From NCBI RefSeq assembly GCF_006345805.1, contig NC_042999.1, forward strand, positions 29,760,001-29,824,000: 64,000 nt of DNA, in the 5' to 3' direction. The stretch is from Octopus sinensis (lineage: Eukaryota). Below, one piece after another: positions 3,461-63,179 of the stretch. The notes under the pieces were generated by a model that saw only the letters and a list, made by a program, of their open reading frames with translations, had not been told where the DNA came from and did not search any database. Position 1 is the first letter of the stretch, and each line of letters opens with the position of its first letter. The position numbers and the translations under genes were made by a program.

Positions 3461-3618
3461 TATTTAAAAGCAGCAGAAATTCAACAAAACCTGTTACTCG
3501 GAGTTTCACGTTCCTGTTCGACGGACAGTTTTGTTAGAACTTTAACAAAACTGTCCGACGAACGGGAACGTAAAGCTCCGAGTAACAGGTTTTCTTGAAT
3601 TTCTGCTGATTTTAAATA
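3461..3618. repeat. 158-bp foldback palindrome (76-bp arms, 6-nt loop) carrying the 3' half of a hammerhead ribozyme
   Basis: Arms TATTTAAAAGCAGCAGAAATTC...GGACAGTTTTGTTA / TAACAAAACTGTCC...GAATTTCTGCTGATTTTAAATA with 6 mismatches. The minus strand of the left arm reads GAAAC-TCCGA-GTA-ACAGG. Confidence 0.9.
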
Positions 3619-3850
3619 AAGCATATTACTCTACCCCTGGTATTTGAGTACTCTTTTTTCCACCTTGTTTCACATTTATGTGTTTACTCCGGTATATATA
3701 TATGTATGTATATATTTATCTATCTATCAGTCAATCTATATATCTACCTATAAACAAGCACATACACACACTTACACACATTTCATACGTACATATGTAT
3801 ATATATATATATATATATATATATATATATATATATATATATATATATAT

Positions 3851-4459
3851 AAACAAGAAGGGTAGTAATATTATTTACTACCAGGTGCCCAGCACAAAAC
3901 ACGAATTAGTCATAAGACAAAAATATTATTCATATAGAAAAATATTATTCATGTAGTTATACAATTAAGGGCTCCTAAATAAAGATGCCGAGTGCTGGGA
4001 ACACAAAAGGGGATGAATTTATCGAGAGTGAAAATCAAAAACGTTTACCGATAACTTTAACAACTCGTACCGCGGTTTCTGCTTCTTTCTAGCAAAACAC
4101 AGAATATGTTTGCTAAGGCCAGCTTCATCAGCGAGTCGCCTAAATTTAATCGAGGTCTGCAGCGATGTGGGACTATGTGTTGAATCCGACTACTAGCAGA
4201 TCTTAACTTTTCAAATCTCTGCGCAGACGCAAAATTTACACGGGCATGCCGGGAAGAATTTTACGAATAAATCCATCATGTGGTGTGCGAATATAAACAA
4301 GAAGGGTAGTAATATTATTTACTACCAGGTGCCCAGCACAAAAGACGAATTAGTCATAAGACAAAAATATTATTCATATAGAAAAATATTATTCATGTAG
4401 TTATACAATTAAGGGCTCCTAAATAAAGATGCCGAGTGCTGGGAAGACAAAAAGGGGAT
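3851..4459 (-). mobile_element. ORF-less HHR-bearing partial-tandem element (444-bp unit, 164-bp terminal duplication), retrozyme-like / non-autonomous PLE
   Basis: 3851-4014 is repeated almost identically at 4295-4459. An HHR lies in the unique middle, and both ends abut (AT)n. Confidence 0.8.
4063..4136 (-). ncRNA. Type I hammerhead ribozyme
   Basis: Minus strand: ACTCG-CTGATGA-[A GCT...TAGCAAA-loop-TTTGCTA...AGC A]-GAAA-CCGCG-GTA^CGAGT. Stem I is ACTCG/CGAGT, stem III is the palindrome ACCGCGGT, and the GUA cleavage site falls between 4068 and 4067. Confidence 0.85.
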
Positions 4460-4544
4460 ATATATATATATATATGTAGGTCCCGGGTTGATTCGGGGTT
4501 AACCACAGTAAATAAGGTACTCAATACATAGCAGAGTAAAATTA

Positions 4545-5633
4545 ATTTATTATATAGAAGGAGCTTCTACAGGACTAGAACTGTTTCATTCAAGAGAAAT
4601 CTTCAGGAAGCTAGTTAACAAGAATTGTATTGGCATTTATACATTTAGGCGGGTTTAAAGGGGTGGTGGTGGGGGACTTTTTTGGGGGTAGGCATAGCGA
4701 AAAAAAATCATACTTGGGGGAGTGGTCAAGGAGTCAGTGGTAAATTAGATAGAAGAATAAATAAAAGAATAAAAAAAGGGAATAAAAAAATATATAGAAG
4801 AATAGAGTTTTAGGTAAATAAGGAAATTCTCACTTATACCTATACACATATGTATACATATATACACACACACATGTATATATACACACACACGACCACA
4901 CATACACATACACACATACACACATATATATATATATATACATACATATATCTACATATATATATATATAATATATATATATATATATATATACATACAC
5001 ATATACATGCATATACATATACACACACACATGTATATATACACACACACGACCACACATACACATACACACAAAAAAATATATATACATACACACACAA
5101 ACACATACACACATACACACACAAATCCACATACACACATGCACTCACAACACACAAGTCCCTATATACTCATATATACATATACACATATATGTATATA
5201 TACATATATATATTATATATATCTATATATATATATATATATATATATATATATATATATATATATAGATATATATATATATATATATATATATATATAC
5301 ACACATATGTGTTCCTATTCATACCTACACATACACACATATACATACAAATACAAACCCATTCCCTAATTTGAATTTATTATCTTCATTTTTTACTTTT
5401 GTTATCTTTGACCGCTGGTCACAAGCATCTTGGCTACGACAGCTAGTCCCTTTCATCTTTCTACTTGAGCACAAGCACTCACTCACGCACGCACACTCAT
5501 TAGCACGCACACTCATTCATTCGTACGCTCATACACATACACGCACGCACGCGTTATATTCATACATACATACATCTACATACATACACGTATATACACA
5601 TACGTACGCGTACCTACAGATTCATGTCTACAA
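4545..5633. repeat. Left arm of ~1 kb inverted repeat (partner 16146-17122)
   Basis: Unique segments (4545-4850, 5360-5480) match the reverse complement of 16830-17122 and 16290-16410 with only scattered substitutions. Microsatellite lengths differ between the arms. Confidence 0.95.
4562..4612 (-). ncRNA. Type I hammerhead ribozyme (PLE 3' pLTR)
   Basis: AGCTTC-CTGAAGA-T TTC TCTT GAA T-GAAA-CAG TTCTAGTC CT-GTA^GAAGCT. Stem I is a perfect 6 bp, stem II has a U.U closing pair, and the triplet is GUA. Confidence 0.85.
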
Positions 5634-59650: not shown

Positions 59651-60449
59651 ATATCCATCTATATAAGCGCGAATGTTTGTAATTTTTTTTCTCTGTTTCA
59701 ATATTCTATGTTTATTACTGCGATTTTTTTCATGGTTGTTGGTGTATAGGTACAAGATTGTCGCTATAGCTGAATGTCTTCATAAACGTGTGTATGTCAC
59801 ATGTGTGGTTGTGTACGAGTTTATAGAAGTAAACCGTGTTTACAAAAATACAGCTTGTATATATGTTACGAATCTAATTATTATTCAAGTTTTGTCCTGC
59901 TTTGTTTATAAAAAATTTAAAGTTGAAATTGAAGATCGGAAGATGGTTCACAGATTAATTTCCATATTCTTTAAATGGAACCTCAACATGATGAAACAGA
60001 AGACGCTTTCGTACATTTTGAATTTAATCACAATATTTTATTATAATGTTGGTATGCCCTCTGTTCTTCAAGATAAATGTAGTAATTCAAATTAGTTTGT
60101 AAACCGTATGCTTGACCATATCGTTTAAAGAACTTGCTGATAACCAAAGTCTATATGTCGTAATCCTGGTGAAACATATTCAGCAGTAGCTTCAGATTGC
60201 CCGATAATTACGAGATTTTGTTTCATAGAAACTCCCAGAATATTCATAGGTATATATATGAAAAACATCAGTAGAGATTGCTTTTTGGAGGACCCTGCTA
60301 AAAAGCAATCTCTACTCATTTTTTTTTCAAAAATACATATAATAGGCTAGCAAAATATGTTTTTGTTATTCTACTATATTTATATATATTACAAACATGT
60401 ACTTGCAACGGGAATGACATGACATGAGAACGTGTACTGACAGAAAAAG

Positions 60450-60728
60450 AATTGCAGCGTGGAAGGTGTTTATAAGCCAATTAAAAACACAATAATACCG
60501 TTAGATTCATAACATTTAAATTTAGTTTATCAAAATATTTTCGTCGCTTTGAGACCGCGATCTCTTCATTGACAAAATTCCGTACTGCATCACGATAGTT
60601 TGTCGGTGAACATGTCGCGGTCAAAAAGGTACGAAAGAATTTTGGGAAATTAAATTTAAAATTTGAAGTGAATCTAACGGTTTTGGTGTGTTTTTAGATG
60701 GCTTATAAACACCTTCCACTCTGCAATT
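60450..60728. repeat. Palindromic foldback family copy 2 (279 bp)
   Basis: AATTGCAGCGTGGAAGGTGTTTATAAGCCA ... TGGCTTATAAACACCTTCCACTCTGCAATT. Confidence 0.85.
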
Positions 60729-62610
60729 GTTATACACACGAACACACACACACACACACATATATATATACATATAAATATATATATATATACATACTTA
60801 TATGTCTATCTGATTTTTCTTTCTATATACTACACGCGTTCAAACACGCGCACGCACACACACAACATTCCAAGTTCTTTTATTCATTTACAAGGCGTAG
60901 AAACAGTGAAATGTTGCTGACACAAGTGTGTGAATCTGAGAGGAAAATATTTGACATAAAACCAGAATATTTGACATAAAACCAGAATTACACATTTTAC
61001 CGAAACCCAGGAACCTTTAAGCACGCCTTTGAGCATATGCATATAATTATGAGAAAATAGGATTCATGAAAATTTTTATTGATCACAACCATCGTTTCGA
61101 CCCAATTTCAAACGGTGCATTGCGGGTGACATACTATATAGTGAGGTGTGGTGCATCACTCAGTGAAGATATTTTTCTATTCGTGGGCTTTTCTAAAACG
61201 ATACCTTGCTCGATAGACTCAGTTCCGGTTGGTTCGATTAGTGTGCATGTTGTTATTTTCAGTAGGTTGTTGGATCAAATGACAGGGTGTGAGCATAGTA
61301 TCGTGGTTATCAACAGTTAATGTGTATACATATGATTGATATTTTAATAAATGACGTTGAATAAATGACAATAAAATAAAATAAAAAATGAACAAAAATA
61401 AATATACATTTGTAGACATTAACACGCATATAAGGCACACATATACACAGCTATATGAGCGCATGCACATATATAGCGGCGCTCACAATGTTAAGGAGAT
61501 ATCATTGAATATACTCATAAAAAACTAGGATTTATGATTTTAGAGGCAAAGAGACAAAGGGTATCTGCAGGCACGTTGTGAATCAGTCTTCAACCCGGTA
61601 CACAAGACTGAGCCGGGATGTCTGGTAGTGGTTTGATGTAATGATATAAAATGCCTAGTCACCGTATACGTATGCGCAATTTTTTATGCGTATATTTATA
61701 GGCAAAGGCTGGTTTGTGTGGTAAGAATATTGATTCCCGTCAACATGATTCCGGGATTAATTCCAGTCGGGCAAATATGTTCTACTATCACCGGGCGGAC
61801 CTAAAACTTACTTGTGAAAGTATTTTGTAGACAGAAACTGAAAGAGGCTCGTCGAAAATATGTGCGAATATATAAATATATATATATATAGAGAGAGAGA
61901 GAGAAAGAGAGAGAGAGAGAGAGAGAGATAGATAGATAGATAGATAGATAGATAGATAGATAGATAGATAGATAGATAGATAGATAGATAGATAGATAGA
62001 TAGATAGATAGATAGATAAAGATATATGTACATGTGTGTGTGTGTGAGAAAAGGTAATTCCTTTTATATATATAGTACTGTCGTAAAGACTGCACGTATC
62101 ATATCTCTCTGTTCTAACTTTTCTCATGTCAAAGACATTATTTCTTCCCCGTACGCTCTTTTACCCTCGTTCTGGTCTAACGAAACACCAGGTTTGGTTC
62201 CCGTCGTTTTCTTTGTATGTCTCCACTGTCCTGTTTTTGTTCCTACCTTTGATCTTCCATAAGTCCCAAATTTTATTTTGGTACGTACGGGTGCAACTGT
62301 CTTCGAAGTCTCATATGGTCATCCAATGCTCGTATTGCTGAGTAGATAGACAGCTGACAAGTGATGAAGTGTCATTCTTTAAGTTACTTGAGCTGTTTTG
62401 CATTTGTTTCCTGTTTTGTCTCCGTATTGAAGTCATTTGCATTCGTATTTCCTGTTGTTTACTGCTGGTGGCGTCCTGTACGCACACATGCAATATATAT
62501 ATATATATATATATATATATGTATTTCATGTAGGATAATTTTTTTCTAAAAACACTTCACCAATGGTCAGCATATTAAAAAATGCATTTAAAGGTTAAAT
62601 TTATAAACTA

Positions 62611-62961
62611 CTTATAAATAAAGGCAAATTTTCTAATGCCAATATGCCGAAATTAGACACTTTGTCCATAACCATTATTTTTTTTTGTGAAAAATTATAC
62701 TGGTTATGGACAATATATATATATATATATATATATATATATATATATAATATATATATATATATATATATTATATATATATATATATAACTGATAAATA
62801 AGGGCAAACAAAAAAAATTCTAATGACAAATATGCCGAAATTAGACACCTTGCCCATAACCATTATTATTTTTTGTGAAAAATCATAGTGGTTATGGACA
62901 ATGTGTCTAATTCCAGCATATTTGGCATTAGGAATATTTTGTTTGCCCTTATTTATAAGTT
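62611..62961. repeat. Foldback element in (AT)n: complete ~173-bp hairpin at 62789-62961 and truncated copy at 62611-62713
   Basis: ATAAATAAGGGCAAAC...TTAGACAC.TTG.CCATAACCA / TGGTTATGGACAATGTGTCTAA...GTTTGCCCTTATTTAT. Confidence 0.85.
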
Positions 62962-63179
62962 ATATATATATATATATATATATTATATATATATATATGT
63001 ATGTATGTATGTGTGTATGTATGTATGTATGTATGTATGTATGTATGTACGCATATATATATATATATGAGCTTACACATAGGTGGTGCGACATTTTATA
63101 TGTTGACACTTCTTTCCGATGGTCTAATTGCTGTTTTACCTTACTTTTCAGATAAATAATGATTGACATAAGGTGACTT

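Follow-up and report, generated by a model that had tools for sequence, protein, structure and literature searches.

Hammerhead ribozyme units, a Hydra-clade Penelope-like element and (AT)n microsatellites in a 64-kb window of the Octopus sinensis genome

The window examined here is a stretch of 64,000 nucleotides from Octopus sinensis (contig NC_042999.1, positions 29,760,001 to 29,824,000). It is a repeat-rich part of an AT-rich aquatic-invertebrate genome, in which (AT)n microsatellites have been landing sites for retroelements and, separately, for a Helitron. The (AT)n tracts probably receive the retroelements of a single mobilisation system, composed of a Penelope-like element (PLE) of the Hydra clade and non-autonomous units that carry hammerhead ribozymes (HHRs); the Helitron is not part of this system. 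The identities of the elements, their geometry, their association with (AT)n and the statistics of the ribozyme motifs are observed directly. All of the window's elements belong to known kinds, and the window is a clear example of a known phenomenon rather than a new system: (TA)n targeting, inverted 5'-truncated copies and the link between retrozymes and PLEs have each been published previously.

A decayed Penelope-like element and a second remnant

By its sequence features, the autonomous element is a Hydra-clade PLE that has a reverse transcriptase (RT), a GIY-YIG endonuclease and a type I hammerhead near its 3' end. The open reading frame (ORF) of the larger copy, PLE#1 (14484-16150, minus strand), contains the RT motif LYRDDGL, a linker (CNCPDKTTC) that fits the pattern CxCX5C, and, at its C-terminus, a GIY-YIG endonuclease with the motif VY...YIGMT...R..H. 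The C-terminus itself, CDLCISE...CMH, fits the CxxC and CxH found near the conserved E and N of the Hydra clade. The ORF has 248 homologues, which come from sea cucumbers (Apostichopus proteins) and marine assemblies, and the best protein matches are 45% identical. In tblastn the segment 16150-14484 (-) is colinear with homologues that have the order RT-linker-GIY-YIG (P0002, P0012 and P0114), with E-values down to 4e-83. The Pfam match to GIY-YIG is weak (E = 0.07); for the PLE RT ORF and for eight full-length homologues Pfam gave no match, so that the PLE assignment rests on homology and motifs. As for the clade, homology to the Apostichopus proteins is consistent with membership in the Hydra clade and is not a phylogeny. 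Decay is evident from an in-frame stop near 15.93 kb, from two frameshifts (near 15100 and near 14708) and from the loss of 14 residues in the RT.

The decayed PLE#1 (minus strand, from 17122 to 4545) has the layout that is classic for PLEs: an inverted 5'-truncated copy and a near-full-length copy lie head-to-head. The left arm, 4545-5633 (-), represents the sense copy's 3' terminal region. In a self-comparison of the window by dust-masked blastn, through which the repeats were mapped, it forms an inverted repeat, 85-93% identical, with the right arm at 16146-17122 (+). This right arm is an inverted 5'-truncated copy of the 3' region. It joins the N-terminus of the ORF head-to-head at 16146-16150, and its far end abuts (AT)n. 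An HHR lies in each arm, on the minus strand in the left one (4562-4612) and on the plus strand in the right one (17055-17105), just as a first-pass annotation of this DNA had reported for a PLE with RT and GIY-YIG domains. The same layout, (TA)n <- HHR(-) ... ORF -> HHR(+) -> (TA)n, is found at two loci from other sources (L002 and L006). Inverted 5'-truncated copies and tails are typical of PLEs, and Hydra-clade PLEs combine (TA)n targeting, HHRs, pseudo-long terminal repeats (pseudo-LTRs) and inverted truncated copies (PMC8557442). The left arm has a possible 68-nt tail at 4477-4544 that reaches the (AT)n tract at 4458-4475; this extension may be the PLE 'tail', and it is longer than the published 30-40 bp.

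PLE#1 was later split by microsatellite growth, by a small HHR unit (U125, 238 bp) and by a 6.1-kb Helitron. The first-pass annotation had taken the whole for one PLE of 12.6 kb. It is instead a composite: the GC-rich centre, 6394-12537, is a nested Helitron that had been overlooked, which rules out a single element. Blocks of compound microsatellite of the (TA)/(TG)/(TATG) type, at 4770-6150, 12780-14335 and 16430-16830, lie within or between the parts of PLE#1.

A second remnant, PLE#2 (27957-28591, plus strand), is an extreme truncation with an 81-nt inverted arm. Its sense fragment starts inside the endonuclease domain (28038-28330, E = 3e-8) and is preceded by an inverted copy (27957-28037) of its own terminal segment (28511-28591), 93% identical. 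No HHR was detected in 27957-28591.

Hammerhead motifs in the window

HHRs were sought with a type I descriptor, which asks for CUGANGA, a helix II with at least three of five closing pairs, GAAA, a helix III of the form A...U with at least three nested pairs, any base but G at H17, and at least four of six pairs in helix I. In the 64 kb it identifies 10 distinct cores; 200 dinucleotide-preserving shuffles give a mean of 0.26 and a maximum of 2. Direct reading likewise finds cores at the sites that the first-pass annotation had listed. Eight HHRs are good, and a ninth, at 35229-35291 (-), is near-canonical; the core itself (CUGANGA, GAAA and H17 not G) is exact at all nine. The descriptor together with folding yields three helices around the core, with helix I open. 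The descriptor missed the related pair at 32.7 and 53.2 kb because helix I is bulged there. Three further descriptor matches, 27534 (+), 52142-52228 (-) and 58349-58422 (-), were dropped, as they are without support from the covariance model R1 described below.

The best formed of these motifs, 50124-50226 (-), lies in the unit U490 and has an 8-bp helix I, a helix II closed by ATCCG/CGGAT and the helix III ACGGTATACCGT; its unconstrained minimum free energy (MFE) fold, at -33.2 kcal/mol, is the three-way hammerhead junction. The same is true of the two PLE#1 motifs, 4562-4612 (-) in the sense copy and 17055-17105 (+) in the right arm. In the sense copy, helix II is of 3 bp with U.U at positions 10.1/11.1, and the cleavage site is 22 nt from the end of the arm. 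The HHR of U444, 4062-4137 (-), has the helix III ACCGCGGT, a 6-bp helix I and a 45-nt helix II with A.A at its base, and that of U125, 12537-12592 (+), has the helix III ACGTACGT and U.U at the base of helix II. Helix II is weak, with a non-Watson-Crick 10.1/11.1 pair, at 4062, 4562/17055 and 12537. The HHR at 28.9 kb, 28938-29022 (+), combines the helix III ACATATGT with a 54-nt helix II. Finally, the HHR of U327, 32727-32816 (-), has the helix III ACGATCGT, and that of U532, 53183-53270 (+), has the same core, helix I and helix III.

Six of the eight good HHRs have a perfectly palindromic helix III (ACGATCGT accounting for two of them), which bears out the earlier observation of a palindromic stem III in most. 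Predicted homodimers form an intermolecular helix III with a free-energy difference (ddG) of -7 to -14 kcal/mol.

Covariance scoring with Rfam and with a clade-specific model

The first-pass annotation had proposed covariance scoring as a check on the motifs, and the outcome depends on the model. Rfam run over the whole window is without a match at the gathering score, and at E <= 10 the window and sub-regions of 1.3 and 3.5 kb give microsatellite matches to miRNA models and no hammerhead. Short stretches of 81-151 nt, covering four of the sites (50124, 28938, 17055 and 12537), behave differently. With 151 nt around 50124, the top family is Hammerhead_1, with a full-length match of 21.4 bits, and at 28938 the sole match is Hammerhead_1, at 15.1 bits; the short stretches at 17055 and 12537 have no hammerhead match. 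Since the 21.4-bit match at 50124 is lost to the speed filters in scans of 3.5 and 64 kb, negative Rfam scans are unreliable for HHRs with long helix II insertions.

The homologues of the PLE ORF lead to 82 loci (L001-L082) from other genomes and marine metagenome assemblies. On the ORF strand of these external loci the descriptor detects 77 HHRs, and on the opposite strand 9. When 54 unique HHRs from the set, pre-selected for pairing by the descriptor itself, are aligned, the covariation score is 0.689, compared with 0.200 when shuffled and at most 0.163 in slid controls, and 10 of the 12 pairs change on both sides. The covariance model R1 was built solely from these external sequences and was run over the entire window with filters off. 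Its E-values are rough, and they are as follows: 4562 (-) and 17055 (+), 29.7 bits each (E = 3.8e-6); 50124 (-), 21.4 bits (E = 0.001); 35229 (-) and 12537 (+), 20.2 bits each (E = 0.0024); 32727 (-), 17.0 bits (E = 0.021); 4062 (-), 13.6 bits (E = 0.22); and 28938 (+), 13.0 bits (E = 0.32). The low scores of the last two are due to their helix II insertions of 45-54 nt. Thus the motifs fall below the Rfam gathering score, but six sites are supported by R1 at E of about 0.02 or lower; because R1 recovers them, the motifs of the window pass a covariance test appropriate to the clade, and they are real. The Hammerhead_1 model and the speed filters of Rfam miss this entire class, which a small clade-specific model finds.

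The external set also bears on the base of helix II. Positions 10.1/11.1 are usually regarded as a conserved G-C pair. Among the 77 external HHRs, U.U is the commonest state (32, with G-C in 29), and it is this state that is seen in 4562/17055 and 12537. There is a precedent for U.U at the base of helix II in the axolotl HHR_Amex2, which is weakly active and dimer-dependent (PMC7229834).

Short hammerhead units and their association with (AT)n

Apart from the PLE, the window holds five non-coding families that have type I HHRs with a short palindromic helix III: U444, U490, U327/U532, U125 and the unit at 28.9 kb. U444 (3850-4459, minus strand, GC 0.37) is a partial tandem of 1.37 copies with a period of 444 bp and a 166-bp terminal repeat that is 98% identical, and U490 (49894-50684, minus strand) is one of 1.61 copies with a period of 490 bp, 99% identical. 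Both have (AT)n on either side, and their longest stop-free stretches are 67 and 53 codons. Each holds one complete HHR. U490 has in addition a truncated one, the upstream HHR copy, within whose helix II the sense-strand 5' end of the element falls. The other HHR units are single copies. U327 (32682-32892, minus strand) has its 3' end in (TA)n about 50 nt past the cleavage site. U532 (53106-53317, plus strand) is a second copy of this family in the opposite orientation, 87% identical, with its 3' end in (AT)n; the two agree exactly in core, helix I and helix III and have diverged in the interior of helix II. U125 (12538-12775, plus strand) abuts (AT)n at its 3' end and abutted it at its 5' end as well before the Helitron inserted. 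The host of the 28.9-kb HHR, also on the plus strand, runs to (TA)n at 29230. The GC content of the HHR units is 0.25-0.37 (about 0.36 for U444 and U490).

One feature that these units have in common with one another and with the PLE is the position of their 3' ends. Every one of them lies at most 5 nt from an (AT)>=5 tract, a distance that a random position has with P = 0.059, and the earlier description of HHR elements as lying in or beside (AT)n thus stands. Although the boundaries of U125 and of the 28.9-kb unit were set in part by the (AT)n tract itself, the seven 3' ends that are set by repeat homology alone are within 1 nt of (AT)n. For PLE#1, the end of the right arm (17122) is 0 nt from (AT)n and that of the left extension (4477) 2 nt. 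In the external loci, (TA)n follows 10-122 nt past the cleavage site in 27 of the 77 HHRs, and many contigs break there. Between the 5' end of U444 and the 3' end of PLE#1 (its 68-nt extension counted in) lies a single 18-nt (AT)n tract (4458-4475), which implies successive insertions into one microsatellite.

U444 and U490 also share a weak, positionally conserved 3' module beside (AT)n (3857-3895 and 49909-49960). It consists of an 8-bp hairpin (GGTAGTAA...TTACTACC in one, GGTGGCAA...TTGCCACC in the other) followed by CCAG..GCCCAGC, and can also be written as GTCtTATGACTA...GCTGGGC..CTGGT. This module could be a recognition or initiation element for the reverse transcriptase.

Pairs of HHR elements that are arranged tail-to-tail around a single (TA)n tract were seen in other genomes (L001, 5709-6026; L050, 2272-2567; L074, 2507-2675). 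Those in L050 and L074 join different families, and the polarity is opposite to that of the head-to-head palindromes of the window.

Two classes of foldback

[quoted passage not shown] The four fall into two classes, of which one fits this description. FB34 (3454-3625) has 83-nt arms that are 90% complementary around a 6-nt spacer. Both of them are HHR relics whose 3' tails face outward, and both cores carry mutations: the left arm reads CCGUCGA (on the minus strand) and the right arm CCGACGA, which marks the motif as an inactivated HHR. The arms nonetheless align over the full length of R1 (10.4 and 6.4 bits), and they have Smith-Waterman scores of 36 and 31 with external HHRs of the ACCTGT...ACTCGGAGT...ACAGG subfamily; the shuffle maximum is 29, and 0 of 300 are as good. 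In FB35 (35186-35458) the arms measure about 136 nt, and the left one is the site of the near-canonical HHR, 35229-35291 (-), whose helix III ACTCGGAGT is identical to that of several external HHRs. The right arm is decayed (CAGAAGA, GAAAGTC), so that here the described geometry is retained on the left only; both tails face outward, and at its right end FB35 adjoins (TA)5. FB34 and FB35 are therefore HHR-derived, and PLE#2 has the same layout.

The other two foldbacks, FB56 (56725-57150) and FB60 (60447-60731), are one family, which is not HHR-related. In none of the four arms is there a CUGANGA box; R1 gives at most 7 bits, all spurious, and there is no similarity to the external HHRs. The two copies (n = 2) run colinearly, begin and end alike (AATTGCAGCGTGGAAGGTGTTTATAAGCC) and share one inversion point, and so behave as a fixed unit, an outcome that had been named beforehand as refuting an origin from truncated retrotransposition. 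Neither copy shows a clear target-site duplication. The distance from their ends to (AT)n is 29-610 nt, and of the foldback ends in general one of eight is within 5 nt of (AT)n, so that foldback ends, taken together, are not associated with it. FB56, FB60 and probably the other palindromes are unrelated MITE-like repeats.

The inversion point lies at different distances in the head-to-head structures, at about 1 kb in PLE#1, 136 nt in FB35, 83 nt in FB34 and 81 nt in PLE#2, and such differing inversion points are what truncated PLE-type insertion predicts.

Several other repeats lie near or resemble these foldbacks. The left arm of FB56 is broken by a 136-bp segment (56767-56902), which belongs to an inverted pair of about 150 bp (55429-55582 and 56759-56902, 92-95% identical and 1.2 kb apart). 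Between the two copies is a 189-codon ORF (56202-56771) that has no Pfam match. More palindromes or inverted repeats without an HHR signal are found at 29763-30102, 62713-63022 and 20047-20678; the one at 62.7 kb is mainly microsatellite, and the one at 29.8 kb scores against the external HHRs like its own shuffles.

How the families may be related and mobilised

The families have in common the ribozyme type, the presence of (AT)n at their 3' ends, and insertion layouts like those of a PLE, both partial tandem and head-to-head. In the first-pass annotation they appeared as one continuum. The sharing of motif, target and geometry agrees with that view, but no sequence homology extends across families: Smith-Waterman comparisons among the 3' arm of PLE#1, the arms of the foldbacks and the short units, set against shuffled controls, give nothing beyond the cores (z <= 3.9), the exception being the weak 3' module of U444 and U490. 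Consequently, a continuum or partnership is argued from motif, target and layout, and not from shown descent.

We infer that a PLE mobilises the short units, that priming on both strands occurs in the Hydra clade, and that the HHRs are catalytically active. The short units would be retrozyme-like or SINE-like (short interspersed element-like) passengers copied by the PLE enzyme, and the partial tandems of 1.4 and 1.6 units may be the non-autonomous counterpart of PLE pseudo-LTRs. The ribozymes would cleave read-through or multimeric transcripts, best as dimers formed through the palindromic helix III. FB35 and FB34 would be head-to-head double insertions of heavily 5'-truncated HHR units, and their likely cause is a PLE protein that nicks both target strands and primes reverse transcription from each. 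In vitro, a purified PLE protein of the Poseidon clade does cleave and extend both target strands, and reverse transcription starts at an internal stem-loop; HHR cleavage is dispensable in vitro for a PLE, and uncleaved RNA is the dominant template (PMC11167929).

A more general proposal, which we put forward tentatively and regard as somewhat doubtful, is that PLE-type retrotransposition routinely makes short, perfect-looking palindromes, and that part of the 'MITE-like' foldbacks, here and in other invertebrates with Hydra-type PLEs, are retro-derived. Both strands of (TA)n would be nicked and primed at the same internal site of the HHR RNA, and the two 5'-truncated cDNAs would meet head-to-head; FB35, FB34 and PLE#2 might then be three points on one truncation series. 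No paper on PLE-derived mini-palindromes was found in the literature, and such palindromes follow directly from the known layout of PLEs. They constitute a concrete genomic prediction for the both-strand priming that is seen in vitro with a different PLE clade. Their putative retro-origin is a modest lead, and the one that is worth a genome-wide follow-up.

Alternative explanations

The short HHR units could instead be classical non-LTR retrozymes, whose self-cleaved and ligated circular RNAs are reverse transcribed by rolling circle into units of more than one copy, a route that the published model for animal retrozymes proposes (PMC7229834). The partial tandems would then not be pseudo-LTR-type products of a linear template; the difference concerns the template only, and a PLE RT could still do the copying. 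U444 and U490 resemble such products in being 1.37 and 1.61 head-to-tail units that are non-coding and have a GC of about 0.36, and the 5' end of U490, which falls at an arbitrary point in the upstream HHR copy, is as rolling-circle copying and 5' truncation would leave it. However, there is one complete HHR per locus, the unit lengths of 444 and 490 bp are above the reported range of 170-400 nt in retrozymes of animals, and U327, U532 and U125 are single sub-unit copies that end some 50-185 nt past the cleavage site rather than at it. With uncleaved RNA as the dominant template for a PLE in vitro (PMC11167929), we consider the circular route unlikely. A different explanation concerns the foldbacks, all of which, FB34 and FB35 included, might be ordinary MITE-like DNA transposons or inverted duplications at the DNA level that hold or captured an HHR fragment, with no reverse transcription involved. 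The FB56/FB60 family, with its constant ends and inversion point, acts in just this way, several other palindromes in the window are without an HHR, foldback ends lie mostly away from (AT)n, and FB34 has TA on both sides and TG...CA termini, so that the TA could be a target-site duplication. For FB34 and FB35, though, this explanation is rather improbable: their arms are almost wholly HHR plus an outward 3' tail, as in PLE#1, PLE#2, L002 and L006, one end of each adjoins (TA)n, and the inversion points vary among the structures. Finally, the clustering might have no functional basis, the (AT)n tracts being generic fragile or permissive sites that gather any insertion and the HHRs inactive relics that share no mobilisation system. 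It is true that the Helitron, an unrelated transposition system, likewise lies in (AT)n, that every PLE ORF in the window is broken, and that several HHRs are non-canonical and below the Rfam thresholds. Yet Helitrons have their own known target preference between A and T, and the non-HHR foldbacks are not associated with (AT)n, which indicates that the tracts are not a general sink. The tracts are abutted specifically by the 3' ends of HHR units, an association that recurs in unrelated genomes and is published for the Hydra clade, and U327 and U532 have kept core, helix I and helix III identical at 87% overall identity. Clustering of this kind is thus very unlikely to account for the window.

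The reading that we prefer, a Hydra-clade PLE and its non-autonomous HHR units sharing the (AT)n tracts, has several observations against it beyond the lack of similarity between families. PLE#1 and PLE#2 are both dead copies, so that an active partner is not shown in the window. Unlike at the external loci, the sense copy of PLE#1 is without an HHR within 250 nt of the stop codon, and assigning the left arm to it assumes that later insertions separated the two. Three HHRs have a non-Watson-Crick 10.1/11.1 pair and several have helix II insertions of 45-68 nt, their activity being only predicted; no candidate reaches the gathering score of Hammerhead_1 (RF00163), 34 bits, and two of the four short stretches were missed. 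The model R1, with its rough E-values, derives from an external set that the descriptor had filtered for pairing. FB34 and FB35 each adjoin (TA)n at just one end, and the window has one or two copies per family, so that the variation in inversion point is seen between structures and not within a family.

Relation to known systems

PLE#1 closely resembles the Hydra-clade PLEs described by Craig, Yushenova, Rodriguez & Arkhipova in 2021 (PMC8557442). The likeness includes the CxCX5C linker, the CxxC and CxH near the C-terminus, an HHR in the 3' region, insertion in (TA)n, an inverted 5'-truncated upstream copy and homologues in Apostichopus and other aquatic invertebrates. Unlike them, PLE#1 is dead, with one stop codon, two frameshifts and one deletion; its 3' region, about 1 kb with microsatellites, is separated from the ORF by some 9 kb of nested insertions, and its HHR has a helix III of 16 nt that is only partly palindromic.

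Type I HHRs in AT-rich, tandem, non-autonomous elements are known to coexist with PLEs and probably depend on them (PMC7229834; preprint 10.64898/2026.07.22.740005), and dimer-dependent HHRs with a short palindromic helix III have already been published. The short units are non-coding and AT-rich, U444 and U490 being partial head-to-tail repeats, and they share with the non-LTR retrozymes of animals (Cervera & de la Pena 2020, PMC7229834; Li, Clavereau & Pollet 2026, preprint) these traits of composition, type I HHRs, coexistence with PLEs, a short or palindromic helix III that favours dimers, and the U.U for which HHR_Amex2 is the precedent. They differ in having 1.4-1.6 units per locus with one complete HHR each, in their period (444 and 490 bp rather than 170-400 nt) and in the 45-68-nt helix II insertions of the window HHRs, and the remaining units are single, SINE-like 3' fragments. 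No mention of specific (AT)n insertion such as that of the window units was found in the retrozyme literature searched. With the minimal dimeric hammerheads of PLE pseudo-LTRs (Cervera & de la Pena 2014) the window HHRs have in common the type I topology, the arrangement GAAAC-palindrome-GU-H and a predicted dimeric helix III. In the window, however, helix III is of 8-12 nt (4-6 bp in the dimer) rather than 1-2 bp plus a tetraloop, and several have a long helix II. The same minimal dimeric hammerheads of PLE pseudo-LTRs are reportedly treated also by Lunse and colleagues (2017).

The head-to-head geometry invites comparison with the twin priming of L1, in which, as Ostertag and Kazazian are said to have proposed in 2001, a second priming on the other strand leaves an inverted 5' segment beside a truncated sense copy. 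Twin priming in L1 inverts a different, more 5' part of the RNA and hence produces no palindrome. Unlike that, both arms of the structures in the window duplicate the same 3' terminal sequence, as if both strands had been primed at the same internal start.

The non-autonomous HHR units thus share with the PLE clade a very specific (TA)n target as well as the partial-tandem and head-to-head layouts. Beyond co-occurrence and likeness to pseudo-LTRs, this is a separate line of argument for the published hypothesis that PLEs mobilise animal retrozyme-like elements. For annotation, the apparent 12.6-kb element resolves into a Hydra-clade PLE, a Helitron nested in it and a small HHR unit, and apparent MITEs are partly retroelement debris. 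The analysis is of use in that it identifies the nested Helitron, assigns the PLE to the Hydra clade, separates HHR-derived from unrelated palindromes, and finds that a clade-specific model is needed to detect these ribozymes.

The nested Helitron and other features

The Helitron that interrupts PLE#1 (6394-12537, plus strand, 6.1 kb) is unrelated to the hammerhead system. It contains a frameshifted RepHel ORF, fragments of which match the Pfam families Helitron_like_N (4.7e-30), PIF1 (9.8e-41) and STPR (5.4e-13). Compared with the Helraiser transposase 7LCC, residues 427-539 and 1099-1334 are matched at 1.8e-26 and 4.2e-36, in the expected order. The 5' end, TCTCTCTATATA, directly follows (AT)n at 6394, and the 3' end consists of a CCCGG/CCGGG hairpin and then CTGCTAG, which ends at 12537 and is followed by T. 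The junctions read ...ATATATATA/TCTCTCTATATA... and ...CCCGGGCAACGCCGGGCTATGCTGCTAG/T, an insertion between A and T without a target-site duplication, in a single copy whose ends were each seen once. The element thus shares with RepHels of the Helraiser type the colinear Rep and PIF1, a 5' TC, a 3' hairpin with CTAG and insertion between A and T. It differs from them in its frameshifted ORF and in its extra N-terminal STPR DNA-binding repeats.

The HHR that begins at 12537 was considered as a part of the 3' end of the Helitron. This reading was rejected and the two were taken to be simply adjacent, since the hairpin-CTAG terminus stops one base before the HHR and helix I still forms with the (AT)n flank: without the Helitron, helix I pairs TATATGAG with CTCAAATA by way of that flank.

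Three stretches of STPR (PF21107, E = 5.4e-13) lie in the N-terminal part of the Helitron ORF, at 7499-8959 (+). To our knowledge, STPR is not a standard component of RepHel proteins. The best named relatives of the Helitron are cephalopod proteins, at about 60% identity, and its GC content of 0.49 compares with 0.35 in the surroundings. The compound microsatellite blocks within and between the parts of PLE#1 give rise to long spurious ORFs and to dozens of sub-threshold matches to miRNA models in Rfam (mir-297, mir-3149 and others).

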